NCBI GenBank assembly: GCA_028023455.1
Contig: JAQFVV010000003.1
Span: 24,304,001-24,368,000, forward strand
Direction: 5' to 3'
Origin: Epiperipatus broadwayi
Taxonomy: Eukaryota; Animalia; Onychophora
Length of the DNA stretch: 64,000 bases
Within the stretch, counting starts at the first letter, position 1. Every line of letters starts with the position of its first letter. Position numbers and translations under genes: made by a program. This document shows, one piece after another, positions 10,013-60,615 of this stretch. The notes beneath the pieces were generated by a model that did no database searches, had not been told where the DNA came from, and saw nothing but the letters and a program-made list of their open reading frames with translations.

Positions 10013-10071
10013 ATCCAATATCCCCAGACTAGTTTCTGGCTTGTGGCCTTCGTCAGTGAGGAGCTTTGGAT
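10013..10071 (-). ncRNA. Type I hammerhead ribozyme (family B), second tandem copy
   Basis: Identical to 9557-9615, 456 bp downstream. Confidence 0.85.
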
Positions 10072-10456
10072 CTGAGAGCACTGCATCTAGATCTTAGGAT
10101 CTAATGCAACCCTCTAGCAACCACCTTTTATCTCCACTTAACTACAAAACTATGAGAATGAAATTGAAAACACAAAAAATATTTTCAATCTAAGCTCAAT
10201 AGCTTATATAGTCATATGGGTCTGAACTCAGTTAATAGGATAGTGGTGGCTATGGTTGTAAAAGAGCCAAAGACACCAAAATGTATGGGTGCTGAACTGA
10301 GTTCAGACCCATATGACTATATAAGCTATTGAGCTTAGATTGAAAATATTTTTTGTGTTTTCAATTTCATTCTCATAGTTTTGTAGTTAAGTGGAGATAA
10401 AAGGTGGTTGCTAGAGGGTTGCATTAGATACTAAGATCTAGATGCAGTGCTCTCAG

Positions 10457-10515
10457 ATCCAAAGCTCCTCACTGACGAAGGCCACAAGCCAGAAACTAGT
10501 CTGGGGATATTGGAT
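10457..10515 (+). ncRNA. Type I hammerhead ribozyme (family B), inverted copy
   Basis: CTGACGA 10472-78; stem II GGC/GCC; GAA 10492-94; palindromic stem III ACTAGT; predicted cleavage after C10501 (GUC). Stem I TCCTCA/TGGGGA is extended by ATCCAA/TTGGAT across an internal loop. Confidence 0.87.
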
Positions 10516-29812: not shown

Positions 29813-30046
29813 AATTTTACCATCAAGATTTGGTATCCCCTTCAAATCTGCAGTTGATAGCGCGGTTGGCGGGATGCGAAAACAAACGAAAGATTGAAAA
29901 CTGTTTGGATCTTGCCTTTCATCATAAATATCGAACATATGACGGCACATGTAATAATCTGCAAAATCCATTATGGGGAGCTTCTCTTACTCCTTTCAAG
30001 AGATTAGTCAAATCGGCATATGAAAATGGCTTTAATCTTCCTATTG
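29813..30046 (+). CDS. Pxn: Peroxidase domain 1, N-terminal exon ([10 protein letters not shown]...ENGFNLPIG)
   Basis: ttttcag acceptor at 29811-12, G/gtaagt donor at 30047; [19 protein letters not shown]. Confidence 0.93.
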
Positions 30047-33000
30047 GTAAGTGAATGGATGGGATATTAGAAAGTGGAATGTTACTAATATATATATTTT
30101 TGCGAATGGGAAAAATAAATAATTTCAAAGCTAAATAAAAAATTTCGAGCGTTAAATAAATTTTCCTAAATATTTATATAAATGTTTTTTTTTTTTTAAC
30201 AAAGTTAACTAATCTGAGAAATTAATTAAGTATTAAACCCCATTTATTACTAAGCTGTTGCAAATAAAATTAAGATGTCTATAATTATTTAAGATTAAAA
30301 TCCTTAATAATTTTAATCATTAATAGTTAAAAATCAGTGTTTGAAAGTTTTCATATAATAGTTTCATTTTTATAAAAGTTAACTGAATTTTGTATTTTCA
30401 GAATTATAATTGATCCTTGTAATGTGATGTGATGTATTATGAATGAAAGCATTAAGCGTCCTCTATTAGCTAATTGTGAAAATAAGATATAAGCTGTTGC
30501 AAATTTTTTTTTTTTAAAAAATTGAGCATAGAATTATATATCATTTTTTTTATTAAATTTTCTGCTAATTTTATTGTAATTATCTCAGAAAAACAATCAA
30601 AACTGTAGCTATGGCAATTAGTTATAATTATTGCTGTCATTTAATGTTCGAAATTGAGAAATGTTTAATTATTGATTAACATGCATTTATTCATATTATT
30701 CTGATAAAAAAAAACTATTTGATTAAGAAAATTTTTGTTTTTTTTTAGGTTGGAATAGTTCACGATTATATTTTGGATTTGCAAAACCAACAGCTAGACT
30801 GGTATCGTCATCTCTTATATCCACAAGTACAATTAGTCCAGATTCTGAATTAACACATATGGTCATGCAATGGGGTCAGTTCTTAGATCATGATCTAGAT
30901 TTAGCTATTAATGCAATCAGCCATGAACGTTTTTCTGATGGCATACCATGCACTGGCTCATGCAAAAAAGATCACCCATGTTTTCCCATAGATATTCCAT
31001 CTAATGACTCTCGCAACAGGCACAATCATCAGTGTATGGAATTTTTACGTTCTAGTGCAATTTGTGGTTCAGGAAGTACATCTGTATTTTTTAATACTGT
31101 AATGCCTCGGGAACAAGTCAATCAAGTGACAAGTTACATAGATGCTTCTATGGTTTATGGAAGCAGTGAAGCAGAGGCTCTTCGACTTAGGGATCCCCAT
31201 AGTCTTGGATTAATGAGAATGGGAATTACAATGGCCCAAGGAAAACAACTACTACCCCCAAATATTAATGCACCTATGGATTGTCAACAGGATCCTTCTG
31301 AACGCCACATTGGTTGTTTTTTAGCAGGGGATATTAGAGCCAATGAACAGTTAGGATTGTTAACAATGCACACTCTCTGGGTAAGAGAACATAATCGTAT
31401 TGCAAAGGAATTACCCAAAATAAATCCTCAATGGGATGGAGAAACTATTTATTTAGAAGCCAGAAAAATAATAGGAGCTGTATTGCAGCATATCACATAC
31501 CAGCATTGGCTCCCCAAAATTCTTGGTGTAAAAGGCATGAATATTATTGGACATTATAGAGGGTATGACCCAACTATTGATGCTTCTGTTGCTAACTCAT
31601 TTGCTGCAGCAGCAATGAGATTTGGACATACTATGATCAATCCTATTCTTCAAAGATTGGACAATGAATTTCGAAAAATACATCAGGGGCATTTACCATT
31701 ACATAAAGCTTTTTTTGCACCTCATAGACTTGTTGAAGAAGGAGGAGTTGATCCAATCCTAAGAGGTTTATTTGCTGTTCCTGCTAAAAAATTAAAACCT
31801 GATGAGTTTTTAAATAGTGAACTTACTGAACGACTTTTTGAATTAGCTCGAACTGTTTCATTGGATTTGGCTGCATTAAACATTCAGAGAGCACGCGATC
31901 ATGGAATTCCAGGATATCTAGAATTTAGAAAGTTCTGCAATCTTTCACATGCTGAAACTTTTAATGATTTGCGAGGTGAAATTCGTGACGTAACTTTAAG
32001 AAACAGGATTCAGAGAATTTATGGACACCCTGGTAAGTAAAAGATATTTTATAATTTGTAACATTAAAACTTGAATAATTTTTTTTTTTTAATTAATACA
32101 TTTTTTGTAAAAATATTGTTTTCACTTACAGGTAAAGTTAATTTAATTTGTTGAGATATGTATTTTGTTGTTGTTTATATGTAAAATTAAAACACAGTTT
32201 TTTCTTTTCTATTACTAAAAAATTATAATCTAAATGCAATATCATTAATTTCACAACAATGATTTTACCAGATAATTTTTTTTCTGGATTTAAATTTACA
32301 ATCATAAATTTTCGTGAAATCTCATCAAAATCAAGATGACTAATACCTATTTGGAAGAAATAATAAGGATATCATAGCATGCAGCCTAACATGGAAAAAT
32401 TGATCAAAGCTATAAAGCAACTTCATTTTTCTCCTTAATTATTTTTGAAAGAATTGTAATTGATTTAAATAATTTTAATTACAAGAATAATTATCGATTT
32501 TTATTAAATATATCATTTGATTTATTTAACTAGTATTTTTCTGTAAAGACTTCTGATAATTTAAAGTTTAATCATCTCTGCCCTATAACATTTTTAAAAT
32601 GTATGTATAGTTTAGTTTAATTTTTTAAATGTTTGCATTAAGACATTAATAATAAAAAAAGGATACACTTTTGAAAAGGACTACAGTAGTAAATTAAGAG
32701 ATCTAGAGAGAGGAGGAGTAGCCATATGATTGTTCTAGATAAGATATTAGGCATCTGTTAATTGGATGTAAATGCTTGCAAGTAGAAAGGGCACAAATAA
32801 TGAAGTTGTGAATAATAAATATAAACAAAGGGATTATATAGAAAGTGGGTTCTTTGTTTTTATGCTAGGTTTGGAAAAAGATAAGGGGTAAAAGCCATGG
32901 AGTTGACAAAGATTATAGAATGGAGCAGGATAGAGAAGAATATGGGGAAAACTTAGAGTGGGGAATGGAAAGAGAAGGTAAAGTGGCTAACCGATTTCTC

Positions 33001-36000
33001 TGGATATGGTAGCTGAGAGATTTCTGATTTCGAAAAAGAAGTCACAGTGCATCTCATCTCATCTTAAGAGAGTGAATGACTGAAAGATGATTGATGATAA
33101 TATTCATACTGGCAAGTGTGAACATGAGATTTACGAATTCAAATTTACATATATTTAAAAGTGATTAATGAAATAATAGATATCAAATCTGCCAATGAGG
33201 AAGGGAGATTACTATATTTATAAAATGTTAACAAAAAATTTCTGCGCTAATCAAAGTATTTCCCTTTAAGATATTTAGATTTTTATGATGAACATTTTTT
33301 GGTTTATATGTTTTTTTAACTAAAATATGTTCAAAACCAAAGTGTAACATGAAAACTTGAAAAAAATATATATATTTTTCTTCTTTTAGATTTGAAACAT
33401 GTTTTAAATATTTTTATTTTTTTTGTTTGCATTTGAAAAAAAAAAAATCTTGGAAATGTTTAAAATGATTATTTATTTGAGAAATTTCCCTGTTGTCAAG
33501 ATAAGATAAGTAGTGCGTTAAATAAGACCAGTTAAGTATTTGTAACATTATTGGGGGGAGGGGGAGTGTCTGTCTCTCCACTTATTTAAAAGATGTTACA
33601 AGTTGAATTTCGTTTCACACTATTTTCTCCTCCTCATTTATTACAAAACACAACTTTGTTACAAAATATCTTTTAAAAAGAAGTTATATATATTATAAAA
33701 TTATTAGGGGTTTTCTTCTCTCTTTATTTTAACTTTTTCCATTATAAGCTTGAATAACAATGTTTATCAGATGGTACTGTATTTAACCCCCAAACTCAGA
33801 CTGGATTCTGAGGACTTGGAATTCAAATCTTGAAACCATTACTGGTTATCATCTTTAACTTCTGTCGGTACTCCCCCCCCCCCAATCAAGCTAATAACCT
33901 GAAATTTTGAAACCAAGCTATCTTACTTGCATAATTAGTTAGATCTAATAAGATGCATAACTTGATTTTCTCCACATTGTTTTATTCTATAATAATTTAT
34001 TGCAAATCAAATGACATTATAATCATTGACCTGTGAAGTTTTGATTTTCAATACATCGTAATATGCGGGATTCAAACTCAGACTTTCACACGACCCACTA
34101 CTCTCAGTGCCATCTCATATTGCTAACCCACCTGAATATTGGCTATCTTAATATAAAGTTGAGCACTGGTTGTATATATGTGTGGAGATGGTAATCTGGA
34201 CCAACTGATGAGTGCTGGTTTAGCATGAAATACTATATTGATGATTATTTATCTTTTCAACATGTGTGTGATCAGCTGGGTCAACAATATGAGATGGCAC
34301 TGAGAGTAGCGGGTCGTGTGAAAGTCTGAGTTCGAATCCTGCATATATTACATATATAAATGCAAGTTTAAGCCTGTACAATGTATTAATACATCGTTAT
34401 GTGTTTTAATGACGTAAAAAGCTCCTCAATGTTTAAGATGCTCTGTTTGGATTAATACAGTGCTAGAATGGTAGACCCTGGAGCGCAAAATCAGTGACTC
34501 ATTTCTGTCACTTCGTGAGCTCAACTTTTTATGAACACCCAAGCAATAAATCATTTGATTATTTTTTTATTAATCTTTATGATATAATTCTAATATTGAG
34601 CTGCTAGAATCAAATATGAAAAAGGAGTAGCAAATAACCAACATATAATAGTAAAATATTATTTGCTGATTATAAAACGTATTGGCTACACTAAAATAGT
34701 TGGTTAGTTGTTCAGGAAATAATATGACATTCGATTTCCAGAAATCGTGTGAGGTTTGATTACAAAAGTAACTGGTTGATCTTTAATTTAGGAACTTTCC
34801 CTTGCTCTTCAAAAAACCATTTCAGAGAAATTTAGGAATACATTTGGTATCTAGAAAAAACCATTTAAAAACATATATATAATGCGATATTTTAAAATAT
34901 TTTTCTTGTAAGTTTTAAGGGTTGTACTGAATCTATATAATGCAACCAATGATAACGATTCGTGTATTGATCTCCATAATTTATAACTTGGAATAAGTTG
35001 AATGTTGGAAATTATTCAGCACTCAATTTTAAAAAATTTTTTCCAGCAGTTATTCATTGCCATCTATTTATTGGTTAGTAAATAGGTATCTGGCTATTAA
35101 TAATTATAGAATAAAGTTTCCAAAATAATCAGAATTGATCAGATGACGATGCATTGGATGTCAAATATTAAATACAACTAATATAATTCTTCTTTCACTG
35201 CTGGCAAAGGGGGAGGGGCCTTATTTCTATAGGTGCTGAGCCCACTTTTAAATTCTATTTTTCCATTATTTTTTATTTCAAATTCTTGTGTGTTTTTACT
35301 TTGTGCACATTTTTAAAACGTTCACTTAATTCTCCTGCCCCCCTCCCCTTCTTCAATATAGATTGTACTTCAACCCATTCAGTGCTATTGGATTTACATA
35401 TATATAAATAATTTTAAAAAAGTCTAACATAAAAGCATTGGCAATTCATCAGCTATCGATAGGATGATTCTTCAATTGAAAGTAGCTTGGATTAATTAGT
35501 CACCAGAGGGCTACAAAATAAACAAGTTTAGTGCATTCGAGGCCTACTTATGGCTTTATATTCATAACACTGAGAGTTAAATGAAAGTGCATGTATATAT
35601 ATGCAATAAGTTTATTCAAATTATATGGAACATTTTTTATATAGGGGAAAGCAGAATTCCTTCTTATTAATGGAGTTGGGATTGTTGGTGATATGCCATG
35701 CTTCTTTAATCTTGCACAAATGTGATTGATTTATTAGATTATTCATAACCCTTTTATAAAGATATTTATATTGTGATAGCCTTGTGGTGAGGTTGGCACA
35801 TGATTCATTGTAGTAGATGGCATTGCATCTTGCTTGGGTGCATGCTATCATATACATTGTGAGGTATTTGTTCATTAGGGAATCTTATCTTTCAAATTGT
35901 TTATGAGTCTATTTTTTGTGGGTGGAATGTGATATCTTACGTGATGAGATGTGAGCAGATTTTAATTAAGTTTTTGGCTATACATGGAATATAAGGGAGC

Positions 36001-39000
36001 AGTATCCATGCTCTGTCATCTTTTGATGGATTTGTTCTCATTTTGTTATAGAACTTGTTCACTATCCTTGTGAGCGTTCTATATTTGAATCCTACACAAC
36101 ATAAATCATATAGATATTTCTCAATGTTGGCCTTACAGGCAGCTTCTTGTTTTCATAAATGGTGGTTTGCATAAAGTAACAATGTTAGGCTGGTATATGG
36201 GTTTTGAAAGAGATGGATTCATAGTTCATATATTCTCTTATTTTGAAAAAGATGGATTCATGCTTCATATATCCTCTTATTTTTATTGGCTTTAAGTGAA
36301 GCTTCTCCTTTTGCACATAAATGTTGAGGTATTTTAACCCTTGTTGCTCATTTTCACATTCACTTGTCCAGATTAGTGTGATCTTTGCCTCTAGTTCCCA
36401 TTTAATTTTGTTGATTTGGAGCTCCGAGGCACATATGAAACATTGTAAAAAATTTAAAATCACTTTTGAAATTTTGTTTGGATACTAGAAGCTTTTGAAT
36501 AATAGATTAAGAATATTCTACCTGTATCTCAATTATTTAGAGCTATGTCTTAAACTTAATAAGCTTTTAAATATAAAGTTCACAAATAATTATTATATAA
36601 GTTTTTAAATTGTTAGTGCAGTGTACATGTTTATAATAGATTTTAAGATTAATATTAAAATTAATTTACATAAACAACTTTCATGCATTCATGAAAAGAA
36701 AACTAAAGGCAAATAAATTTTGTTAGAATATCATTAATTTTTTTTTTTAGATATATACTTATTTACTACAAAAGAAATTATTATTATATTAATTTCATAA
36801 CAATTTTCTTTTATAATATTATTTGTAGGTAATATTGATTTATTTGTGGGAGGAATTAGTGAAACACCAGTAGATGGTGCACGAATTGGACCTACTTTCA
36901 TTTGTCTTTTGGCCCATCAATTTAAACGTTTAAGAGATGGAGACAGGTAACATTTTTTCATTCACTGCTTTATTTTCAATGCTTGATTCAGATATTTTTT
37001 ATGTATAGAAAAGTATTAGATCACATGAAATTAATGATAATTATTTTAATACACAGGACAGATAATATATCCACTCACCATGCTTATAATCCCTTGATTC
37101 AAATTCAGGTCTAGTAATGTTGGAAATTTTTTCAAAAAGACTTTGGTGAGGGATTTTTTTTTTTTTTTCAAATACCTAAACAATAACCCAAGCCAACCAA
37201 CCATAATTATCTAATATTAATCGGGGAAACGATTAACTAACTATTCTTAACTAGAAGTAAAGAAATGGTGAATACTGACTTTTCTTCAACACTCCTTTAT
37301 GAAAAGCTTCTGCCTTAAAATGGACAGTATAACCAAAGTAAAAGTCAACCATCCAGTCATAACTATTTAATATTGGTCAGTAAATAGGTATCTAGATGAG
37401 TTTAGCTAGAGGGTAAAACAATGGTGTAAAAATATTTAAATACCATCTCTCAATTAACAAGTCTAATAAAAATTTACTGCTCCTTCACTATTCCTCTACA
37501 AAGGAGCTGTTGGAGATATTCCCTGAAGTGATGATCTATTGAAAGATTATTTTGCCCACCTTCTCCATGTGTTTCAGAGCATCAAAACTTTATATTCTTT
37601 TTTTTATTAATCAGTACATTTAATGATAGGAAATACCATAACTTGAACAAACTAAGAAATAATAAAATGGCATAAAAATTATGCCATTTTATTATTTATT
37701 AGTTTGTAGTCCTTAGTAGAAATTAAAATTCAAAATGCAGAACTTTCTCTTCCTGTATTGTTTTACAATTTACTGATATATTCCTTTATCGATATTATAT
37801 TATTATGAACCAATAAATGAAAGTTTTCCTTTTCAGGTTTTGTTTTTGAATGAGGGGATATCAGTTAATTATAAACCAGAAGTGCCATTATTTTGTCATT
37901 AGAGATAACTGATATGGTTTGAAAAAAAAATTTATAAATATTTAATTTTAGCATCATATTTCTTTCAGGTTTTGGTATGAAAACCCAGGTGTCTTCCGAT
38001 CTGAACAGTTAGCAGAAATCAAACGAACTTCCTTAGCCCGAGTAGTCTGCGACAGTGGCGATAATATTCAAATGGTTCAAAGAGATGTTTTTCTAATTGC
38101 CCATCAGGAAGATGAATGGCTGCCATGCCATCGGATACCACGTATTGATTTAAATGTTTGGAGAGAAGAAATTAATTCCCCACCTCCTACAGGTAACATT
38201 ATAAAGCTGATGTAATGCATTATTTAATCATCTTTACTCTGTTTAATATTTTGCTTAAAAAATAAGCTTATAAATTTTTATAACATTTTTTATTATTTTT
38301 CTAGCACAGCTGAGCTTTAAACGTTTAAAAAAATTAAAATGTATGATTAGAAAATGGCTAAAATAGGCTATATTGTTCTAAAAATTATCTAATTTTCTCC
38401 CCATGTTATTAATAATTTTAAAATTGTTATAGAGATGTTTGAGATTTCGTTATGTAGAATGGGGTAGGGGGGGGTAATGAGTTAGGGTTTTATGGGATTT
38501 GTCGAATTAAGAGAGTAGCTAAAACAATTACATTTTTAATGTAAGTGCACTGAATACATCTGTTTGTCTTTATGGGAAATATATGGGCTGCTCACAAACA
38601 CGCATTAGCCAGCGTGGTGAGTTTATTGGCTTTTTACTTCTGAGTTTAAGATCAAGAAACACCATGGTCTTTTTTCTCAGTGCCTGATAAAGCAGAATGA
38701 ATGTTTGTGTAAATTATAAATATTTTTCCAATACATATATACAATTATGACAGACAAAAATAAAGCATGGCCCTTATTCCCAGGAGGCTGTAAAGTCACC
38801 AACCAAGGCAGCGATTGGTGGCCGAAGGCGGAGGGTGCTAAGAATCTCCTGATTGTGGACCCAGGCTGCCATTTGATGATGACTTTTTATTTAGGTACTT
38901 ATAACTGCAGATCACTTTCAAGTGAAGGAAGATTGCAAGAATTAGAAGAAGAATTGTCTTATATTAAATGGGACATTATTGGACTTTGTGAAGTTAGAAG

Positions 39001-42000
39001 AAAAGGTGAAGAAACAATTGATTTAAAAAGTGGAAATATACTCTATTATAAAGGCACACATATTGGAAATACAAGTGGAGTAGGATTCATTATAAATAAA
39101 AAGTGGAAGAACAATATTGTGGAGATTGATGGTGTATCGGACAGAGTTGCAAGATTAGTTATACAACTTAATAGCAGATACCAAATGCAGATAATTCAGG
39201 TTTATGCCCCAACAAGTTCTCATAATGATGAAGTAATAGAAGATTTTTATATGGATGTACAAAAGGCTTTTGATCAGAGTAAACTACATTTTAAAATTGT
39301 TATGGGAGACTTTAATGCTAGAATTGGTAGACAAATGAAAGATGAAATTGCTGTAGGTAATTTTGGTTATGGTAATAGAAATGAGAGAGGCCATAGACTT
39401 GTGGAGTTTGCAGAAAAAGAAAAACTTTATATTATGAATTCATTTTTTGAGAAAAATGTTAAACGGAAATGGACATGGAAGCATCCAAATGAAGGTACAG
39501 CAGAATTGGATTATATTTTGACTAACAGGAAATACATATTCCAAGATTGTAATGTTCTTAATAAATTTAACACAGGAAGTGATTATCGATTAGTAAGATG
39601 TAAGATACATGTTAATGCAAAACTAGAGAGACAAAAATTATTAAGAAAAACAATATTTACAGTTGATATTCCTAATCTTCAGAAACATTCTAATGAATTT
39701 AAATTAGAACTTACAAATAGGTTTCAAGTGTTAGGAGATTTTGAACATGATTCAGATTTGAATGAAATTAATATGAAAATAACTGATACACTTTTAAAAA
39801 CTGCAGCAAAGATAGCTGGTAGGAAAAAGCAGCAATTGACTAATAAAATTTATACTGAGACTAGAGAATTTATGAAGAAAAGAAGGAATATGAAGATATA
39901 CAAAAATGATGTATTAAAAAGAATTGAATATCTCGAATTTTGTAAAATGGTACAGAAAAGAGTTGAAAATGATATAAGAAAGTATAACTGTGAAATAGCA
40001 AGGAAAGCTGTAGAAGAAAATAAAAGTCTCAAGAATGTTAAACAACATTTTGGTATTGGTAGGAAATTTATATCTGCAATAAGAAAAAAAGATGGAATTA
40101 TTACTAAAAAGAGAGATGACATCATGAAATTGGTAGAAGATTTTTATCAAGAATTATATAGTAATAAAGAACAAGTACCTCTTATATCTATTACATCTTC
40201 CGAATTGCCCAGAATTTTAAATGAAGAAGTGAGACATGCAATTAAATGTATGAAGAAAGGAAAGGCTCCAGGAAATGATGGAATTATAATTGATATATTA
40301 AAAGAAGCAGGTGAAGAAGTAGAAACAATTTTAGCAAAGTTATATACCAAATGTCTAAATGATAAAGATGTACCGGAAGATTGGAAGAATGCAGTAATAA
40401 TATTAATATTTAAAAAAGGTGATAAAGAAGATATTAGAAATTACAGACCTATCAGCCTTTTATCAGTTTTATATAAAATTTTTACCAAGATAATTACAAC
40501 TCACCTACAGAGAACTTTGGATTTCCACCAACCAAGAGAACAAGCTGGATTTAAAAGTGGTTTTAGTACAATAGATCATATCCAGGTATTGAGAGAAGTC
40601 ATAGAAAGGACAAATGAATATGAGTTGTCATTATGTTTTGGATTTGTAGATTATAAAAAGGCATTCGATTCTATACACATTTCTTCAGTGATTAAAGCAT
40701 TGGATCATCAAGGTATAGATCCAGGATATTGTCATATTTTAAAGAATATTTATAAAAATGCAACAGCAACAATTAGATTACATAATGATACTGGAAAAAT
40801 CAACATTGAGAAAGGTGTAAGACAAGGTGACTCCATATCTCCAAAACTTTTTACAGCAGTGCTGCAAGAAGTATTTTGTGGATTAAAATGGGAAACTAAA
40901 GGAATGAAAGTAAATGGAGAGTATTTAAGTCATTTAGATTTTGCAGATGATGTAGTTGTTTTTGCAAATAATGCTTCAGAGCTGCAGGAAATGTTGCAGG
41001 AGTTATCAGATGAAAGTAGAAAAGTAGGACTAAAGATAAATGTTAAAAAGACTAAAGTAATGTTTAATCGATTTGCTCAAAGTATGAAAATAAAGATTGA
41101 TTATGAAGAATTAGAAGAAGTTAACAGTTACAAATACCTTGGTCAGATTATTAATACAGATGGAAACATAATGGAGGAAATTAATCATAGAATTAAACTT
41201 GGTTGGAGTGCTTTTGGTAGAAATAACTTGATACTAAAAGGAAATATGCCTATGTGTTTGAAAAGGATGGTTTTTAACAAATGTGTTTTACCAGTTCTTA
41301 CTTATGGATCTGAGACTTGGACACTTAATAGAAGAGCAATACAGAGACTTCAGACCACTCAAAGGAGTATGGAGAGATGTATGTTGGGAGTAACAAGAAG
41401 AGGTCGAAAACGCAATGTATGGATAAGACAACAAACACGTGTTACTGACCTTATTGAAAAAATTAAAAGATTGAAATGGAGTTGGGCTGGACATATTGCT
41501 AGAAGAAATGATAATAGATGGACAATTGAAATTTTAAACTGGATTCCAAGAGATTGTAAAAGACCCAGAAAGAGACTACATGTGAGATGGATGGATGAAA
41601 TAAGAAAATGTGCAGGGGTGTTGTGGAAAAGAGAAGCTAAAGATCGGAGAAGATGGATTAAACTTGGAGAGACCTTCATCCTGCAGTGGATTGATAATGG
41701 TTGATGATGATGATGATGATATTTATCTAGTATTTGCAAAATTATAATTTGAATTTTGAGTGACCTAATACATTGAATATCAAAATTCAATTTAAGATAA
41801 TGTAAAATTTAGAATTGTCGATTTGAATATTTATCGAAACCTTTGTTTCATGACCTTCAAAAGAAAAAATACCCCACATACACATTCACAAACTAGCACA
41901 AAACTGATATTCTCACCTCTTAATTTATTGTATTTTTTTTCACTGTTAATTAAAGAAATAATTTACATTCGAATATCAGCCTTTCAAGCTAATTGTGCAA

Positions 42001-45000
42001 ACGCTTTACGAGTGTTAATAATAAATGAATACATTCTTACCAATACAAGATATAATATAACACTCGCAAAGCGTTTGCACAATTAGCATGAAAAGCTGAT
42101 ATTCGAATGTAAATACAAGTGTATACAGACGCTATATAAAATAAATGCTTATTTAAAGAAATAATGAAATAAAAGAAACTGATATCTTGTTAATTAAATA
42201 TTTAAAAATTATATTGTAAAAATCACTAAAAAATATTGTAGGTTGTAAAATTTTTACATTTTATTTATTTATTTTCAGAGAAAAGTATCAAATATATTGG
42301 TGATCCATACGTCCGTCAGTCCATTAATGAAGCTATAGAACAAGTAAACAAAGCAGTTGAAGATACTATTAAAAAGCTACACGATGGGCACAAACCAACA
42401 ACTCCTTCAGAATTTTTAGCCTTGTTTAGATTTCCTAATCCTGAAGCTCGGGAAGTAGCCAGGTCTGCAGAAATTTATGAGCAAACTTTGGAAACCATTC
42501 GTAGGCATATAGAAGCCGGAATGAAATTTAATTTAAGTGGTAAGTTCATTTAGTAATCTTACAAATTTTAATGCATATATAGTTATCTAATGGTAAAATA
42601 TTCCTATATGTTGAATTTAATTTTAATAAGTAAAAAATTCACTACAGTTATACATCAATTTATGGCAGGGTTACATTCCAGCAACCTGGTTACGATATAG
42701 TTAAATTATTGCACTAAAAATAAATAGGAAACAGTAATAAGTAGCCATAATGGCTATGTATTTATAATGACCATTATCTGTAAAAATCTTTTTATTATAG
42801 TTTTGACCACTGGCAGCACAATTGTTTTATTTTGATATAGTTTGTTTTATGATTATAACTTCTTCATGGTAAATTTAAATGGGTATATTGTCACATGGAT
42901 ATATATATTATTTTTAGAAAAAGTTACTGTACATTAAGAACATGCTAAAGATTTAATGACAAAATTATTATCTATCCCTTGTGTACTGTTTCATTAAAGC
43001 CAATTACTTTCATCATCATTTGAAAATGTTATTTCCTAGCAATTTTTGTCATGAGTTTTTATTATAAATGACTTTTTATTCAAAAATTGTTAATATTATA
43101 ATTCTTTGACCACTGGTTGATAGATCTTGAAGTAATGAAAGTAATTAAAATCAAAAAATAAACCAACAAGAATTATTTTTAAAATAAAATTTAATCTTGG
43201 AATTGGAATACATAAATCCTGAATTCTTGAGGTTGCCTTCAGCATTAACTATGTAAATTATGGTATTTATAGTCATTAAATTATTTTGGCTATTATTGGA
43301 TTGGAAATGTTGTGTGGAGTACTCTAAAGTTACCTTAGTATTATTTTAATAATTTCATTTTAAACAAAATACAGTACAATTATTATTTTTATGATTCTTC
43401 TTAAAATAACTAAAATAATAAGTACAGCAAGTATTATTGAATTTGACACATTTTTATAAATTGAATACTTTGAAAACTACACATGTCTAATCGAATTTCA
43501 ATTAATGAATGTTTATAATTAACAATTTTTGTAATTAATAATGTTTAATTTGTTGTTAATGAATGAAAAAAATCATTTGTTTCTCTTTTTGAATAATGTG
43601 ATAAAGAAGAAAAAAATATTTTCTTGAATGATTTGGAAACAAATATTATATCTTATTTATACAATGAATTAATAACTGGTGATTGAAAATTCCCATTGAT
43701 TTGAATTGTAAACTATTTTATAACATCTTGTATTTAATGTTTAGAATGAGCTAATAGAAGATGCTTAAACACTTTGATTTATATTGTCAGCATATAATAT
43801 ATGACTATAATGCATTGATTACATAATTGATTAATTTTTTTACCTATTTTTAAAATTTTATAATGTATTAAAATAAGCTGTTAAAAATTTCATCATTGTG
43901 TAATTTTAAGTAAGTATAGAATACATAAAATTTCTGCCAGTGTTTTAAATTGTGATGATTTAGAGACCATCTTCTCACATCTAGTTTTTTTCCAAGAATA
44001 TCAGTTTTCCATTAATATATAGATATAATCTTCAGTTCTTGAATTATTATTTTTATATCTATGTATTGGAGTTTTCATGTAGTAAAAATATAATAACTAA
44101 ATAGCTGATGTTTTACTACAATAACAAGTACTTTCCTCAGAGCTTCTTCTTTTTCAAATCATAAGAAGGTGTGTGATGAGATTTAAAATCATTATTTTTT
44201 TCTTTGTTATTTTCTCCTCATTCTCAAATTCTATTGGTTGAGAAGTTTTAAAAAATATTTTATCCTCCAATAGCTTTTTCCAAATATTATTAATTTTCTT
44301 CAATTCACACTTTTTATTTATGCTTGTAGGCCTTTTAAAAAATGTTTATGGCTTCCCTTAGCAGTCTCTAGTCATATTGTTCAATTTTTGCCAGAATATG
44401 TGTTTTATTAAAATTGATGTCATGGTTAGTTAATTTAATGTGTGAATAAATGGCTCCTGAATTGGATTTGACTCTAACTGCAAAAATGTGTTCTTCCTTT
44501 TTTATGTTTATTCTATGATTAGTCTGTCCAATGTATGAATGTTAACAAACTCCATATGGAATTTCATATACATCATGACACTCCAAAGGAATTTTATCTT
44601 TAGGGCATGGAAATACTTCATTTATTTTTTTAAATTTAGTATAAATTGTGCAGATATTATTTTTCTTTAAATATTACCAATTTTATCAGTTATTCCCTTT
44701 ATATATGGCAGAACTGTCTTAATTTCTGAGGTATCAAAAAATTTTTTTTTATTATATAAAAAAAACCCTATTGATGATCCTATGATCAAAACCATCATGA
44801 AGAAAAATGTCTGTCATCAGAAAGTCTCTTAGTTCTGTCTAAGAATATCTTTGCCACTGAAAATAATTATGCTGGATGGTGGTGAGAAGAAAAATATAAA
44901 TATTTCCCAGTGCGTGTTTGCTTTCTATATGTACCATGGGATAAAGAACCATCCTCTTTCTTTTAATTAAAATATCTAAGAATGGAAGTTGGTTATTATT

Positions 45001-54000: not shown

Positions 54001-57000
54001 TCTAATGAATGACTAATAAAAATCACTAATTGCTTTTAACTTGTTTCAAAAACCAAACATTTATCTACCACAGCCATCATTTAAAATTTGAAACCATTGG
54101 AATTTTGAACCTTTTTTTCAACAGCTGAAAATTTTCAAGCAAGCTTAGATTTTTTTTAAAAAATAACTAGCCCATATCCAATTCAGTTAGTTATCGAATT
54201 ATTATATTGTTCGGTAAATAGGTACTATATTGCTCTTAAAAACTTTCACTAATTGGAAGTTGTCTAACCTAGTGCATTCTTTATGTTTCTTCTAAAAAGA
54301 AATAATGGATAAGTATTTACCCTTAAGTGATTTTATATTTAATATCATAGACTTTCGCCCACTACTGACTTGAGAAAATATTTTGAAAGTAAATTAAAGC
54401 CCTAAATGTTTAGTCATACAATGTATTTTTATTATAAAAAATGTTGTTCGAATTTAATTTTTTATAATAAAATATACTCTGTCCATTATTTTTGAAAATA
54501 TGGAATAGTAAAATATTTCATTGACCTTATGTAAAGTGCATAAAAGGTTGTGTTATTATTGTTTATTAATGTTAGTATAGTGGAATGATTGATTTTTAAA
54601 GATAAAATAAGTTTAATATGTTTGTTATTTAGATTGAATTTAGTTCCATTTGTTTTATTTTGATAAAGTTTATTTAATTTTTATTTTTTTTAGATTTTAG
54701 TTATAAAGATTTGATTTCACCGGAAAATCTGAAGTTGATTGCAGATGCCGCACGTTGTGGAACTCATCGTAAAGTGGTAAATTGTTCAGACATGTGTTTT
54801 CATCAGAAATATCGTTCTTATGATGGAACATGCAATAATTTCCAACATGTTACCTGGGGAGCATCGCTTACTCCATTCAAGCGCTTATTAAAATCAGCAT
54901 ATGAAAATGGTTTTAATACTCCTATAGGTATTGTGCTGTTAGTATCTTACTAGGAATATGTTTGTTGTTGAGTGTGGAATGCTCAGGCTTTCAATTAAAT
55001 AAAATGAAAAAAAAAAGGGCTGTTATATTCAATCTGTCACTTGGTTATTTATACATCATATGACCTTTCTCAGTAATAACTTTATGGTTATTCTTAACAT
55101 TTAACACCATGTACTAAAAATGGTTAGAAGTAGACTTTTCCATCATCAAACACAAACTACTTTTTTCCAAAAACATTTTGAAGATGGAGGAAATAGAAAA
55201 ATTTATGAAATTATAAACATTTTGTATTGTGATATGTAAAATAATTTTAAAAAAGCAACATAAAGCAGAAACTTTAAAGTTTGTAGACAATGAAATAATT
55301 AGATTAACAATATAACAGACTAGTAGAAATGAAGTTGCAAAAAAAAAATATTAGGAAATTCTTGCTTAGTTTAAAATGAGGTATTATATGGAGAAAAAGC
55401 ATTACAATCAAGAAAGACATAATAAAGTTTGAAAGTCAAATTTTGTAAAAAAAAGAGGAAGTATTACTTTAAAATGGTTTATTGAGAATTGCAGTTAAAT
55501 ATACTTTTAATCTCTTATATTAAATTTGATATTGTTTTGTTAAAAAACATTTACATAAACTATTTATTGTCTCAATTGACAATGATATCTAAAACTTGAT
55601 TGTAAAGTAAGATCATTATTTTGAAGAAAAAAACTATAAATCCCTGTTACTAAAATATATAGTTGCTAATCTAATATTAAGTCTAAGATTAATTTCTTGT
55701 TTATGAAATTAATGCATTCCACAAGATTTAACATAATTAGATTTATGTGAAAGTTGGAAAAACTATAATTTTTTATTATTATGATATATTAATCTTTTTC
55801 TATTGGTGATCTTACTGAGTGTTTCTATTTTGAAAATATTTTTACAAAGCCTACATACATTATTTGAAGTATCATCTTTCTAATAATTTGCAAGTGCTAT
55901 ATTTTTTGTATGTACTTATTTAATGGTGTTGTTCTTAGATAGTTATTAGTAATTACTATTTTAAACTTCATTAAACATTAATATATCTTCTTATATATTT
56001 AAGTAATGAATGCATTTTAATTAACAGTTTTATGATTAATAAAGTTTTATTGTGTTGCTAATGCATGAAAGAAAAATATTTCCTCCTTCCTCTTTTTTTT
56101 TTATATAACTTTGATCAGTACAATAAGAAATAATGCTAATCTGCTGCTAATGAATGAAAGAAAGATATTTTCTTACTCTTTTTTTGTTAATTAATATAAT
56201 ACAAAAAGTTAATTTGCTGTTAGTGAATGAAAAATATATTTCTCCTCTCATTTTCAAATTGTAAAATTGAACTATTAAGTTATCTTTGAAGCTTGTGATA
56301 TATTTTGAATATTTTGCATGTCATATCTATATAATCTGTATATAGATAGATAAGTAGGTAATCTCGAGTTCAAGGCCTTGCAATATTTAAACATCTTCAA
56401 GTCATTACTTTGAACAGTACAATAAATGTAAAGATAATTGCTACAAAAATATCTTCAATCTCATATTCCTCATTGATGAAGATCAAGAGCCAGAAATTTA
56501 TTCTGGGGATTTGGTTGTCATCATTTACCTGGATTGCTGAAGTTAATGCAGATGTTAATTTTAAGTGAAGGATGTCATGTGATTATATGTTTTATAACTC
56601 ATAGAGTTAAATTAATAAGACAATGTGCTTGCAGTCTTAAATTTGAATTGAATGAAAATTTGTTACTGATAGCTCTCGAATTTTCTTCATCTGTGTCTTA
56701 TCTACATGGTTTATCACAATGCTAGAGTAAAACTCAAAAATTAAAGATTCCTGAGTCAAATCTCAAATGTCTGTTGCTCAAATATTATTTTTTGAGTAAT
56801 TTTACTATTAGATTTTTTTATTTTTAGAAATGCCATATTTTTTAAGCTTAAACTTGTTCTTGCATATTCTGTCAGCATTTCTGATAGATTTCATCCTTAT
56901 ACAATATGACAATGCCATTATCTTAAAACTAGGTTTTATGACACAATTATTAAGATATATATATATATATATATATAAAGCTTAAAAATTCATAGTGCGA

Positions 57001-60000
57001 AAAATCCATCAGAGAATAATTGATATGTTACAAATGTACTAAACTTTTCTGACAATATTCTGCAGTATCTTAACTTTGATAATTTCTTCAAAAGTATAAA
57101 TAAAAATATTGCTAATGAACACACATACACATTAACTCTACTAATAAACAAGCATTATGCACATGGAAATATAAAAGCTATAGATTTTACAGTGAAAAAA
57201 CTATCAATATAATAAAATAACTCCGCAGTCCTAGAATAGCCATTATAAGTGCAGTAAGTAATGAGTATGTCTCAAAACCCACATGACATTTCATTACTAT
57301 TGATAAAAAAACCTCAAAATTTAATTTTGTTTTTGTTGTCATTTTCTTTTGCTTTAATTCTGATTTATCTTCTGTTTATTCCTTCTTAAGTCAGGGGGCA
57401 ACATTTTTTATATAAGCAACAAGCATAAATGAATAACTTAAACTTAAATGTATGATTTGTTTATCTGTTTAATAGATTTTTCTCATACTATGCTTTTTTG
57501 TTTCTTACTAATAACATATTTCATTTGTTTTCAATCTGATGTTTTCTTTTATGTTCCTATTATTATAGTTACAACTGATTAAACTAGCATTTTTTATTAA
57601 TAAATATTTTAGATAGCCTTACATATTTTAAATATTAAAAACACTGTATTAAAGGTATATATAGTAGAAACAAGTCTCTCATGAGCTAAAGTATCTAGTG
57701 CTTGTCAGAAAACTAAGCCTTAAGATCTAGGAGTAAATGGACTAATTTATTCTGACAAAAAAAGTGGATATTTGCTTTTATGATTTTATTATTTGAATTG
57801 ATAGTACTTAATATTTTTTAAAATAATTGCTGTTAATAGTCTTTGTTGTGAAATTCACATGCATGTGTATTAAAGATAAGTTTTGCTCCAAAGGCAAATT
57901 GAATAACTAGAAAGATAAAGATTCCTGATCCAAATTTCATCCTATAACTTCTGATGCTCAGTCATGAATAATACTTGATCATCATCCTTGATAGATTTTG
58001 TAAAAAGTTAAAAAAACAATGGCCAATCTAATCGTTTCTCAAACTTTTTCATCCTCACATATTTAGATAAATATAAGATCAAACTATATTATCACATTCA
58101 AAGATTGTTTATAGATAACCAAAGTATTAATCCAGAATAGTATTCATTTATAGAACTGAAATCTGAGGCAATAATCAATAAAGGTAGCATCAGTCTTTTC
58201 AATATGAAACATTAAAGATAGCACTTTTTCATAGCAGTTCTGTAGTGGTCTAAATTTATCCTTTTTTAAACATGGATGATATTAATTATTAGAACATTTT
58301 TTGGAAATTTACAAAAATATTTTGATACTCCAAAATAAGAATAATCTACCATCAAAATAGTCTGATGGAAACATAATTTATAGAAAGAAAAAAAAATCCA
58401 AGTTGGTGAAGATGGTTTTGTACATATATTTGGATATAAATCTATTTCATGAAAAAAAAAAAACAAATATATTACTGTTTCATGAAATAGGTTTATATTC
58501 TTGGTGTTATATATCTGGTAAGCTGTATCATTAATTAAGGAATAAAGAAAATTAAAGATAGCTTAAGAATTTTTCATATAGCTGTAAATATTAAGCTTGT
58601 GGTTTCTAATGGTAAGATAAGAATGGAATTATTTGTTCTTTTAAGATTATTCTTAAAATTTTGATTATCAATTATTTCTAAAATACTTTTTATATTTTAT
58701 ATAGGTTGGAATCAATCTCATCTATATTTTGGTTTTCCTAAACCTTCTGCTCGTTTTATCTCTTATCAACTTATCAGAGCAAATAGCATTACAAGTGATT
58801 CAGCTATCACCCATATGGTAATGCAATGGGGCCAATTTTTAGATCATGATTTGGATTTAGCCATCAATGCTATAAGCCATGAAAGATTCTCTGATGGAGT
58901 AGATTGTAGGAATTCTTGTGACAATCAAATGCCTTGCTTTCCCATTACTGTGCCTGATAGTGATCCTCGTATACTTGATTCACGATGTATGGAATTTGTT
59001 CGATCTAGTGCTATTTGTGGATCAGGAAGCACCTCGATTTTTTTTAATGATGTAATGCCTCGTGAGCAAATTAATGATGTCACTAGTTTTATAGATGGAT
59101 CAAATGTATATGGAAATAGTGAAAAAATAGCTTTAGATCTCAGAGATGTCAGAGGCAATCGTGGTTTGCTCAAAATAGGAATTGTGATGGCATCTGGGAA
59201 ACCTTTAATGCCTCCTAATCAAAATGCTCCAATGGATTGTCAGCAAGATCCAAGAGTCCGTCATATAGGATGCTTTTTAGCAGGAGATATACGAGCCAAT
59301 GAACAGCTTGGTCTTTTGTCTATGCATACCTTATGGGTACGTGAGCATAATCATATAGTCTTGGAACTTCAAAAGATTAATCCTCATTGGGATGGGGATA
59401 TGCTTTATCATGAAGCTCGAAAAATTATTGGAGGGATGATGCAGCATGTAACATACAAACATTGGCTACCAAAGATTCTAGGACCTAAAGGAATGGATTT
59501 GCTTGGTGATTATAAAGGATATGATCCAAATGTGGATCCCTCAGTATCAAACAGTTTTGCAACAGCAGCTCTTAGATTTGGCCATACTCTTATCAACCCA
59601 GTACTGCACCGTTTAAATAATACCTTCCATCCTATACCTCAAGGACACATTCCATTACATAAAGCATTTTTTGCACCTCAAAAGTTAGTTGAAGAAGGTG
59701 GAATTGATCCTATTTTAAGAGGTTTATTTGCAGTTGGGGCTAAAAAATTAGAACCCCATCAATTTTTAAATTCAGAATTAACTGATAGACTATTTGAACT
59801 AGCCAGAAGTATAGCTTTGGATTTAGCAGCATTAAATATTCAGAGAGGTCGTGACCATGGCTTGACCTCATATAATGAATTTAGGAAGTTTTGTAATTTG
59901 ACTGTTGCAGATACGTTCCATGATCTGAGACATGAAATTCAAGATACTTCTGTGAGAGAAAAATTGCATCGCATATATGGTCATCCGGGTAAGTTGTTAA

Positions 60001-60615
60001 AGTGTATTTTCATTTAACTAATATGAATTAAATGAAGTAATTGATTTGGGTGCTAAGACCATACCAGCTACTTGTACAATGAAATAATTTAGAATAAGTA
60101 ATTTTATGAGAAGCTGTTGTGGTTTACAATTATTTATGGAAATTCTCAATGAGGTGTTTTTAATATATATGAAGAGAGATCAATTAATTAGTCTTGAAAC
60201 ACATATTTTTATTTTGGATACTGACATTGTCATAAGATATTATTTTATTTATTTATTTTTTCATCCAGGGGTTTATTTTAAATTCTGTAATTCTAATGTT
60301 AATGTATTTGTAATCCCTTGATCATAATTATAGGTAATTACATTTTAAAGAGTCCCCTACCTTTTTTTATAGTAATTTACAAAACTTTTAAGATTTTTTT
60401 TTTATTATTTTAAAATAGTATAATTATTAACATCAAATTAATTCTTTTTAATTATAGACACTTTTTTTTTACTTCAATATTAACTGTTTTTACATAGGTA
60501 ATATTGATCTTTTTGTTGGTGGCATAAGTGAAACACCCATAGAAGGAGCTAAAATGGGTCCAACATTCATGTGTTTAATTGTAGATCAGTTTAGAAGAGT
60601 AAGAGATGGTGACAG
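29813..60615 (+). CDS. Pxn: Peroxidasin-like heme peroxidase gene (partial) with two tandem peroxidase domains. Exons 29813-30046, 30749-32032, 36829-36946, 37969-38192, 42279-42539, 54694-54927, 58705-59988, 60498-60615
   Basis: All eight exons have AG/GT boundaries and compatible phases (1-1,1-1,1-2,2-1,1-1,1-1,1-1,1-2), giving 3757 nt of open frame. Motifs YRxxDGTCNN, [43 protein letters not shown]. The pro-region and the [11 protein letters not shown] motif are peroxidasin-type. Orthology to Pxn versus a paralogue is not established. Confidence 0.9.
30749..32032 (+). CDS. Pxn: Peroxidase domain 1, core exon (1284 nt)
   Basis: Poly-T-ag acceptor, G/gtaagt donor. Encodes [40 protein letters not shown]. 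Confidence 0.96.
34060..34387 (+). mobile_element. Retrozyme-like family A insertion: inverted 75-bp 5' segment (34061-34135) + sense segment containing a hammerhead, with a 10-bp TSD
   Basis: 34061-34135 is the reverse complement of 34271-34346; TSD AATACATCGT at 34050-59 and 34388-97; homologous to 45800-46540. Confidence 0.85.
34194..34246 (+). ncRNA. Type I hammerhead ribozyme (family A)
   Basis: CCAA CTGATGA GTGCT ggttt AGCAT GAA ATACTAT A / TTG. Core intact, predicted AUA cleavage after 34237. Stem I is partly decayed in this copy. Confidence 0.75.
35530..36440 (-). mobile_element. Penelope-like element relic (RT thumb + GIY-YIG)
   Basis: [61 protein letters not shown] across frameshifts. 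Confidence 0.7.
36829..36946 (+). CDS. Pxn: Peroxidase domain 1 exon ([14 protein letters not shown]...FKRLRDGDR)
   Basis: tgtag acceptor, AG/gtaac donor; not in the ORF track, read manually. Confidence 0.93.
37969..38192 (+). CDS. Pxn: Peroxidase domain 1 C-terminal exon (FWYENPGVF...[19 protein letters not shown])
   Basis: tctttcag acceptor, G/gtaac donor; [20 protein letters not shown]. Confidence 0.92.
38747..41719 (+). mobile_element. RTE-clade non-LTR retrotransposon with an open 985-aa APE-endonuclease + reverse transcriptase ORF (38747-41704) and a (TGA)6 tail
   Basis: APE motifs [31 protein letters not shown] motifs [30 protein letters not shown]-terminal WAGHIARR...RP..R...RW.DEI. 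Microsatellite 3' tail. 5' boundary not resolved. Confidence 0.95.
41961..42114. repeat. 57-bp inverted repeat (3 mismatches, 40-nt loop), CpG-rich
   Basis: 41961-42017 versus 42058-42114. Confidence 0.9.
42279..42539 (+). CDS. Pxn: Pro-region exon of peroxidase domain 2 ([23 protein letters not shown]...[25 protein letters not shown]...MKFNLS)
   Basis: attttcag acceptor, G/gtaagt donor, phase 1-1. Matches the peroxidasin GDPFV..SI.EA...LLALFRYP...ARA.EIFE.TL pro-segment. Confidence 0.9.
43991..45600 (-). mobile_element. Penelope-like element relic (RT + GIY-YIG, frameshifted) with a decayed hammerhead in the 3' region
   Basis: [92 protein letters not shown]. Hammerhead-like CAAGAA CTGAAGA...GAA...TA/TTCTTG at 43991-44043. 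Confidence 0.88.
45615..46540 (+). mobile_element. Retrozyme-like family A, locus 2: inverted segment (~45615-45793) + ~452-bp monomer x1.65 (45794-46540)
   Basis: Period 452 (ggagaagattgaa at 45795 and 46247); hammerhead copies at 45719-45773(-), 45882-45936(+) and 46337-46391(+), each with different mutations; no clear TSD. Confidence 0.8.
45719..45773 (-). ncRNA. Type I hammerhead ribozyme (family A) with an intact palindromic stem III
   Basis: The minus strand reads GATCT gag tCAA CTGATGA ATGCTggtttGTCAT GAA ATACGTAT A / TTGG AGAT. Confidence 0.75.
46620..47050 (+). mobile_element. Decayed copy of the RTE (RT N-terminal region)
   Basis: 46720-46860 aligns by eye to 40370-40510 of the intact RTE. 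Confidence 0.65.
47091..47157 (-). ncRNA. Isolated decayed hammerhead related to family B
   Basis: The minus strand reads CCTCA CTGATGA cagccagaacta GAA ACCAGT C / TGAGG. Confidence 0.6.
47745..48060 (-). mobile_element. 3' end of another LINE (RTE-X-like) with a (GAT)n tail
   Basis: The minus strand encodes [20 protein letters not shown] and ends in gatgatgat. Confidence 0.5.
48075..48600 (+). mobile_element. Decayed copy of the RTE 3' part
   Basis: gaagttaacaattacaaatatcttggtcagatt etc. match 41085-41600. Confidence 0.75.
48789..49150 (+). mobile_element. 3' fragment of a Penelope-like element (GIY-YIG C-terminus, stop at 49034, and 3' UTR)
   Basis: Frame from 48789: RASEH...[14 protein letters not shown]...[10 protein letters not shown]...AINRHD...KKW*; one in-frame stop. 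Confidence 0.72.
49970..50442 (+). mobile_element. Internally deleted hAT (Buster/SPIN-like) element, 473 bp
   Basis: TIRs CAGGGGTGGG / CCCACCCCTG; 8-bp TSD TGTTAATG / TGCTAATG; retains the transposase N-terminus ([16 protein letters not shown]...KAVSLLCHE) at 50218-50340. Confidence 0.85.
51950..52020. repeat. Imperfect 28-bp hairpin
   Basis: GTAGTTGTgcagTCATAGTTGgaGAAAA pairs with TTTTCatCAACTATGAtcgaACAACTAC. Confidence 0.6.
53560..53800 (+). mobile_element. Highly decayed LINE C-terminal fragment
   Basis: Frameshifted FE.WC..K....S...KNEQV pattern typical of RTE-type C-termini. Confidence 0.4.
54694..54927 (+). CDS. Pxn: Peroxidase domain 2, N-terminal exon ([12 protein letters not shown]...[20 protein letters not shown]...NTPIG)
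   Basis: Poly-T-ag acceptor, G/gtattg donor; 234 nt, the same size as the domain 1 counterpart. Confidence 0.93.
56468..56510 (+). ncRNA. Isolated decayed hammerhead related to family B
   Basis: CCTCA ttgatga agatcaagaGCCA GAAA tttattc TGGGGAT aligns with the family B ribozyme. Confidence 0.55.
58705..59988 (+). CDS. Pxn: Peroxidase domain 2, core exon (1284 nt)
   Basis: atag acceptor, G/gtaagt donor. Encodes [40 protein letters not shown]. Confidence 0.96.
60498..60615 (+). CDS. Pxn: Peroxidase domain 2 exon ([14 protein letters not shown]...FRRVRDGDR); the next exon lies beyond the window
   Basis: catag acceptor, AG/gtaac donor; 118 nt like the domain 1 counterpart. Confidence 0.93.

Follow-up and report, generated by a model that had tools for sequence, protein, structure and literature searches.

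A peroxidasin gene with two complete peroxidase domains in the onychophoran Epiperipatus broadwayi

The single peroxidasin gene found in the Epiperipatus broadwayi assembly carries two complete peroxidase domains, POX1 and POX2, which are spliced into one mRNA. The order of domains is Ig4-linker-POX1-linker-POX2-Cterm-VWC. POX2 has both of the cysteines that correspond to the inter-chain positions of human peroxidasin (NCSDMC and WTECC), whereas POX1 has neither (NCLDLA and WREEI). Peroxidasin makes collagen IV sulfilimine crosslinks, and a lineage whose sole peroxidasin has two intact catalytic domains offers a natural test of how domain number relates to crosslinking output and of the cysteines on which the trimer is built.

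The stretch of DNA analyzed, hereafter called the window, is 64 kb long and represents the middle of a gene that exceeds 200 kb. Searches of this gene were run exon by exon. When a fish peroxidasin was used as a tblastn query, Ig exons, two linker exons, two full sets of peroxidase exons, a C-terminal exon, and VWC exons were recovered, all of them collinear and on one strand. [quoted passage not shown] Ig (I-set) exons were located by tblastn with five peroxidasins at window-equivalent positions -110459, -74535, -49437, -21339/-19654, and -19070, which places them upstream of POX1, in order and on the same strand as the peroxidase exons. The remaining features are as follows, with positions beyond the window given as window-equivalent coordinates.

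-18594..-18352 (window-equivalent, upstream of the window): linker-1
29813..30046, + strand: POX1 exon A, phase 1 at both borders, where the PF03098 match starts; reads NCLDLA, with Ala at the Cys736 equivalent and the three other cysteines of the exon kept
30749..32032, + strand: POX1 exon B, the main peroxidase body, with all 8 cysteines present (PF03098, E 7e-135)
36829..36946, + strand: POX1 exon C, NIDLFVGG...RLRDGD; a contig piece covering 36828-36944 is joined to 37967 (GT..AG)
37969..38192, + strand: POX1 exon D, FWYENPG..., with Glu-Ile in place of the CC pair (WREEI) and a phase 1 donor, ACAG/GTAAC
38193..42278, + strand: intron between POX1 and linker-2, absent from the spliced contigs and holding a LINE
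38747-41704: open reading frame of this LINE, an intact 985-aa endonuclease and reverse transcriptase (RVT_1, Exo_endo_phos)
42279..42539, + strand: linker-2, the second copy of the pre-peroxidase linker exon, ending ...FNLS and 72% identical to linker-1
54694..54927, + strand: POX2 exon A, reading NCSDMC, with the Cys736 equivalent kept
58705..59988, + strand: POX2 exon B, the main peroxidase body of the second domain, with the checked catalytic residues intact (PF03098, E 8e-134)
60498..60615, + strand: POX2 exon C
73223-73432 (window-equivalent, outside the window; contig 24377223-24377432): POX2 exon D, ..KIDLAVWTECCQG, reading VWTECCQG
about 87952-93365 (window-equivalent, downstream of the window): C-terminal and VWC exons

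The VWC region was matched by tblastn against residues 1314-1464 of the Megalops PXDN protein P0004, a stretch that is VWC by Pfam, at window-equivalent positions 87952-88200 (E 4e-5), 89735-89881 (E 2e-8), and 93273-93365 (E 7e-6). The last peroxidase exon of POX2 is absent from the 64-kb window, and a whole-genome search placed it 9 kb downstream. The genome-wide search revealed neither a further peroxidasin linker exon nor a further peroxidase exon with more than 48% identity. No LRR exon was detected within 120 kb upstream, and the genome-wide LRR search was dominated by other LRR genes. An initial annotation of this DNA had joined the two domains by a Pro-rich linker. That feature is merely PPP, and the real linker is a duplicated pre-peroxidase linker exon of 87 codons (261 nt).

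The union of the two domains in one transcript is documented by spliced contigs of 6.2-6.5 kb (6250 and 6516 nt, from runs X1 and X4), which join position 38192 to 42279 in frame and at GT..AG borders, thereby skipping 4087 bases. These contigs run unbroken from exon C through exon D of POX1 into linker-2 (record 2997-3600), and further on they match the start of exon D a second time, in a joint that “goes back”, so they hold both domain ends. The contigs derive from organism A, a relative whose sequence is about 2% diverged from that of the window, rather than from the E. broadwayi window itself. Runs X1, X4, and X10 are presumed to be RNA; joints that fall at splice sites and leave no intron behind are evidence for cDNA. 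Because the end of POX1 is joined in frame to linker-2, a single transcript spans both domains, and the LINE that separates them in the gene lies in an intron. The initial annotation had proposed one fused protein with domain 1 in an internal position, and this is therefore borne out.

A different use of the same exons was considered, in which the POX1 and POX2 blocks serve as alternative cassettes, such that transcripts with only POX1 (predicted to lack a disulfide-linked trimer) or only POX2 (canonical) are made besides or instead of the tandem form. The loss of cysteines would then mark a non-crosslinked isoform. All block borders are in phase 1, so that skipping either block stays in frame, and among the contigs of run X10 one stops at 38190 and another starts at 42302, as might happen if the assembly graph branched there. 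However, these breaks are equally explicable by low coverage, the contigs of two runs proceed from POX1 through linker-2 to a second stretch resembling exon D, and among the joints listed there is no alternative joint at 38192 or 42279. Assembled contigs lose rare variants and hence say little about rare block-skipping isoforms. On balance, we consider alternative cassettes unlikely.

Human PXDN forms disulfide-coupled trimers through Cys736 and Cys1315, and the double mutant of these residues is monomeric with reduced crosslinking (PMC8533639). This agrees with the roles that the initial annotation had given to the two residues. In POX1 the Ala of NCLDLA, and in POX2 the second Cys of NCSDMC, precede the distal Gln of GQFLDHD by 87 residues, the same spacing as between Cys736 and Gln823 of the human protein (numbering of PMC8533639). 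At the other end of the domain, the CC pair of POX2 is found 488/489 residues past the Asp826 equivalent, versus 489 in human, and either Cys of the pair could be the Cys1315 equivalent. At this position POX1 has neither Cys. The loss of both trimerization cysteines from domain 1 was thus described correctly at the outset, and the stretches concerned are found on the + strand, in exons A and D. The accompanying statement that domain 2 keeps the first cysteine also stands, but it has to be extended because exon D of POX2, located beyond the window, retains the WxxCC motif as VWTECCQG. Domain 2 therefore keeps both trimerization cysteines and not just the first.

Among 94 single-domain PXDN-type peroxidasins from many phyla, selected by one match to each end of the peroxidase domain, Cys is present in 94/94 and 92/92 at the first and second trimerization position, respectively. 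None of the 94 lacks these cysteines, and neither this check nor the WxxCC kept by POX2 speaks against linking the loss to an internal domain. By comparison with POX2, POX1 retains 14 of 17 Cys columns, and the only ones missing are the Cys736 equivalent and the CC pair, one member of which corresponds to Cys1315. The chance that three random losses among 17 cysteines include the two named positions is p = 15/680 = 0.02. That the internal copy has selectively lost both positions whose inter-chain role is defined by experiment provides independent, evolutionary support for that role. The loss had also been put forward as independent support for fusion of the two domains. Fusion holds on the evidence of the RNA contigs, but the cysteine loss by itself does not support it because a separate paralog or an alternative exon block could lose these residues too.

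Both copies retain the haem-linking and catalytic residues that were checked. POX1 and POX2 both match PF03098, and each has the distal Gln/Asp/His, the Arg, the Glu of the haem ester, and the proximal His. RFGHT is present in both, and the checked catalytic motifs are intact, with POX2 exon B having been aligned to myeloperoxidase. A PDB sequence search with this exon returned no peroxidasin peroxidase domain. Between the two domains, dN/dS is 0.08-0.15 per exon, with dS saturated, and 9 of the 10 differences listed between organism A and the window are synonymous. These comparisons place POX1 and POX2 under purifying selection. Given the kept haem-linking and catalytic residues together with this selection, both domains are probably active peroxidases.

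The same data bear on the view that the cysteines were lost by neutral drift in a redundant copy, in which case the loss would be silent on quaternary structure and POX1 might be a spacer without catalytic activity. Duplication frequently leaves one of the copies under relaxed constraint, the POX1 branch is slightly longer than that of POX2 (0.26 vs 0.20), and exon D of POX1 differs in sequence and length at its C-terminal end. Against this, only 3 of 17 cysteines were lost, those at the inter-chain positions (p about 0.02), the other 14, all checked catalytic motifs, and the calcium-loop motif were kept, dN/dS is about 0.1, and synonymous changes account for 9 of 10 differences between species. 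We judge drift to be improbable, and somewhat more so than the use of alternative cassettes.

In a tree, POX1 and POX2 are sisters (SH-aLRT 99) within the peroxidasin clade. The duplicated block consists of the linker exon and peroxidase exons A-D, five exons amounting to 2121 nt (707 codons), with every border in phase 1. An old in-frame tandem duplication of this block would have converted the canonical Ig4-linker-POX-Cterm-VWC order into the present one, with POX2 occupying the position of the single domain in other animals and being followed by the canonical C-terminal region. The architecture departs from that of the described one-domain peroxidasins, but descent does not, the tree placing both domains within the peroxidasin clade. 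That the locus comprises two adjacent genes, linked by read-through or an assembly chimera, is a notion suggested by database “double peroxidases” that may be merged tandem genes and by a signal-peptide-like stretch between the halves of the hemichordate protein P0001, but it is very improbable here. POX1 does not end in a stop codon, and linker-2, which begins in phase 1, lacks both a start codon and a signal peptide. Ig exons and VWC exons each occur at the locus as a single set, and the junction falls exactly on GT..AG in unique sequence in two runs.

Our preferred account is that a block was duplicated in frame, that both copies are carried in one mRNA, and that trimerization proceeds through POX2 and the C-terminus, with POX1 as an extra head that does not crosslink chains. 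We consider this account as a whole to be probable. The protein would still trimerize as human PXDN does, and POX1 would be an additional catalytic head that is carried along. Its inter-chain cysteines may have been lost for want of a partner in POX1, or because free thiols beside the POX2 pair would scramble disulfide pairing. The initial annotation had instead deduced an altered quaternary structure, which finds no support here. Since both cysteines are present in POX2, and since the canonical C-terminal region (ECSKSGDF..RLRR) and VWC come after it, canonical trimerization via POX2 is the simpler expectation, and we infer from these retained features that the protein most likely forms a trimer with six haem domains. 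More tentatively, basement-membrane peroxidasin may exist in Onychophora, or at least in Peripatidae, only as an obligate double-headed, disulfide-linked trimer of six haem domains in which the inserted head lacks inter-chain cysteines. If true, this would amount to a natural experiment in which Cys736 and Cys1315 prove necessary solely in the domain next to the C-terminal trimerization region. It would also leave room for a division of labor between the two heads, such as collagen IV sulfilimine crosslinking in one and another oxidative crosslinking role in the other.

Peroxidasins have been described with one haem-binding peroxidase domain per chain in all five clades (PMC3533774), whereas the E. 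broadwayi gene has two complete domains per transcript. In other respects it resembles human and other vertebrate PXDN, represented here by the Megalops protein. Shared features are the Ig domains, the pre-peroxidase linker, a peroxidase domain that is about 60% identical, both trimerization cysteines in POX2, WxxCC followed by ECxxxGxF, a basic RxRR site, and the C-terminal VWC. The difference is the extra in-frame unit of linker and peroxidase, upstream of the canonical one and without inter-chain cysteines.

A polypeptide with two animal haem peroxidase domains is also typical of the double peroxidases of arthropods, such as those of the mosquito DBLOX type, the salmon-louse protein LsPxtl-1 (PMC10579435), and the spider and tick proteins P0019 and P0031. 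Of these, P0019 and P0031 were the ones scanned and placed in the tree. Unlike the E. broadwayi gene, these two representatives have no Ig, LRR, or VWC domains, and the same is true of 12 further multi-peroxidase representatives. Their first and second domains fall in two separate old clades outside the peroxidasin clade, whereas the E. broadwayi domains are sisters inside it, and thus the duplication arose independently of the arthropod double peroxidases. Orthology to insect DBLOX was rejected in view of the tree and of the presence of Ig and VWC exons.

A word search with POX1 exon B found no relative above 63% identity in the 216-688 aa range. Word searches with whole P0001 and with the peroxidase region of a centipede PXDN were built to rank multi-domain proteins at the top, and among the matches listed there was no Ig- or VWC-bearing protein with two peroxidase domains. 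The Ig- or VWC-bearing proteins among these matches are all at most 1628 aa long and are therefore too short for two peroxidase domains. P0034, with two matched stretches, was rejected as a double-domain peroxidasin because its gene model is scrambled.

Like the E. broadwayi gene, multi-peroxidase predictions from a hemichordate (Glandiceps P0001, the top match of the profile search) and an echinoderm (Amphiura P0299) have tandem units of peroxidasin-like peroxidases, which are recent in these predictions. These proteins are known from predictions and differ in having no Ig or VWC domains, and P0001 has HYR domains. Given the signal-peptide-like stretch between its halves, P0001 may represent two merged tandem genes, whereas the E. 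broadwayi peroxidasin is a clean, transcript-backed case of in-frame exon-block duplication.

The window is AT-rich (G+C 22-32%), and translated self-comparison revealed that the exons encoding an animal haem peroxidase domain are present as two paralogous sets, termed POX1 and POX2. The three protein strings quoted in the initial annotation all lie on the + strand, at 29813-30046, 37969-38192 (3' end) and 54694-54927. POX2 exon D had no match inside the window and was recovered by a whole-genome search. When Megalops peroxidasin P0004 and four other peroxidasins were searched by tblastn against 224 kb around the window, the matches were collinear on a single strand, in the order Ig, linker, POX1, linker, POX2, C-terminal, VWC.

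Features of the gene (window-equivalent: window numbering extended beyond the window; G000:C3, the E. broadwayi contig holding the window)
window-equivalent -110459 to -18771, four Ig domains (tblastn)
window-equivalent -18594..-18352, linker-1, the pre-peroxidase linker exon (tblastn)
29813-30046, + strand, POX1 exon A
30749-32032, + strand, POX1 exon B
36829-36946, + strand, POX1 exon C
37969-38192, + strand, POX1 exon D, donor ACAG/GTAAC directly after
38747-41704, + strand (sense), LINE with an intact 985-aa ORF (endonuclease and reverse transcriptase)
42279-42539, linker-2, the second linker exon, 72% identical to linker-1
54694-54927, + strand, POX2 exon A
58705-59988, + strand, POX2 exon B
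60498-60615, + strand, POX2 exon C
G000:C3:24377223-24377420, POX2 exon D, 9 kb downstream, frame open to 24377432 (window-equivalent 73432), ending ...KIDLAVWTECCQG, then a GT donor
window-equivalent 87952-88200, C-terminal exon, reading ECSKSGDFNSL..RLRR..
window-equivalent 89735-93365, VWC exons (tblastn)

Judged by sequence, the gene is a peroxidasin. An insect DBLOX-type protein was the initial candidate and was dropped in view of the Ig and VWC exons and the tree of peroxidase domains. Leucine-rich repeats were not found by tblastn of the five peroxidasins over the 224 kb. Genome-wide, the linker exon has no third site beyond linker-1 and linker-2, and there are no further peroxidase exons above 48% identity; within the scope of those searches, it is the sole peroxidasin gene of the assembly. 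It extends over more than 200 kb (window-equivalent -110459 to 93365; G000:C3 about 24.19-24.40 Mb), with introns of up to ~48 kb (linker-1 to POX1 exon A), in agreement with the intron inflation reported for the E. broadwayi genome. Elsewhere in the window, an identical 45-aa ORF occurs three times at 9493-10579, twice on the - strand and once on the + strand.

The duplicated block consists of a linker exon and exons A-D (2121 nt, or 707 codons), and every border is in phase 1. Such borders fit a tandem protein and alternative cassettes alike, so phase alone does not discriminate between them. Contigs from four public runs, labelled guessed RNA, were placed on 36780-42620. Runs X1 and X4, from organism A, a relative ~2% different from the window in these exons, gave individual contigs, 6250 and 6516 nt long, that are unbroken across POX1 exon C, exon D and linker-2. 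Their pieces (36828-36944, 37967-38190 and 42278-42539, at record positions 2997-3600) meet at two joints, each skipping a genomic stretch flanked by GT..AG. The single mismatched letter at the exon D/linker-2 joint reflects a synonymous ACA>ACC substitution; the actual junction lies at 38192|42279, with no break in frame. Intron-free joints at exact splice sites identify the material as processed RNA and, with the uniqueness of the sequence, exclude an assembly chimera. Further on, the contigs match an exon D a second time over its first 31 letters, the signature expected of POX2's own exon D. No stop codon closes POX1, and linker-2 carries neither start codon nor signal peptide.

POX1 and POX2 therefore lie on one mRNA, as observed in a close relative, and the single fused protein proposed initially is borne out by the in-frame run of POX1 exon D into linker-2. 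Minor isoforms that skip one block are compatible with the contig data, since contigs hide rare isoforms. Because exon D is spliced straight to linker-2, the LINE at 38747-41704 is intronic. Depth of this LINE family is very high in all four runs placed, and a degraded copy occupies the next intron (46622-48562).

Both peroxidase domains on the mRNA are intact. The LNIQR.RDHG motif and a 21-residue stretch are retained by POX1 and POX2 alike, and dN/dS between them is 0.08-0.15 for the four exon pairs with computable dS (linker, A, B, C), with synonymous sites saturated. Organism A differs from the window at 10 listed coding sites, 9 of them synonymous. Phylogenetic analysis of 78 peroxidase domains paired POX1 with POX2 as sisters (SH-aLRT 99) within the peroxidasin clade, and placed the first and second domains of the spider and tick double peroxidases in two other clades outside it. 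The duplication is thus old and lineage-specific, and its origin is separate from that of other double peroxidases. Runs attributed to eight organisms (A to H) contain POX1 exon B-specific words.

A review of the family describes a single peroxidase domain in every peroxidasin clade (PMC3533774). Among 16 multi-peroxidase representatives, a Pfam scan found Ig, LRR or VWC in none; the seventeenth protein scanned, P0062, has LRR and Ig but one split peroxidase domain. Two protein word searches, designed to rank multi-domain proteins first, duly placed Amphiura P0299 and Glandiceps P0001 on top, and in both the Ig/VWC proteins returned were at most 1628 aa long. None of the matches could be recognised as an onychophoran peroxidasin (nothing above 63% identity with POX1 exon B). 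P0001 (Glandiceps talaboti XP_077991679.1) carries a Met and a hydrophobic, signal-peptide-like stretch, METSLVKFCILVIAVLSC, at residues ~815-840 between near-identical halves, and may represent an annotation merger of two tandem genes, which is why transcript evidence matters for the E. broadwayi peroxidasin. The 858-aa P0034 of another species has a scrambled order (peroxidase first half, Ig, linker, exon A, peroxidase second half) and probably reflects a mistake in annotation or assembly, not a double-domain protein.

Human PXDN forms disulfide-coupled trimers via Cys736 and Cys1315, as stated in the initial annotation, and the double Ser mutant is a monomer with reduced crosslinking (PMC8533639). 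In POX2 the second Cys of NCSDMC, and in POX1 the Ala of NCLDLA, precede the distal Gln by 87 residues, in agreement with human 736 to 823. The POX2 CC pair lies 488/489 residues past the Asp826 equivalent (human, 489), and either Cys could correspond to Cys1315; POX1 has Glu-Ile there. Domain 1 has thus lost both trimerisation cysteines, as first noticed, and domain 2 keeps not only the first but also the second, in exon D 9 kb past the window, so that the check on domain 2 proposed in the initial annotation comes out in its favour. An exon-by-exon audit found 14 of the 17 POX2 cysteine columns kept in POX1, the three missing being the Cys736 equivalent and the CC pair only; three random losses among 17 would take in both named positions with p = 0.02. 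We compared 94 PXDN-type proteins ranging from cnidarian to vertebrate sequences, all of them with the linker and one match per peroxidase-domain end. Cys occupies the Cys736 position in all 94 and the Cys1315 position in 92 of the 92 where the alignment reaches; no single-domain peroxidasin in this sample lacks these cysteines.

By sequence comparison, POX2 and the C-terminus retain canonical trimerisation and processing features, and among the features compared POX1 lacks the inter-chain cysteines only. The altered quaternary structure suggested in the initial annotation is therefore unsupported. Its Pro-rich linker amounts to three prolines, behind which comes the duplicated 87-codon linker exon. 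The POX1 cysteines may have been lost for want of a partner, or because they risked mispairing with the POX2 cysteines ~90 residues downstream. Most probably, the chains trimerise like those of human PXDN, by way of POX2 and the C-terminal region, and POX1 would serve as an added catalytic head outside the inter-chain disulfides, so that each trimer would carry six haem domains.
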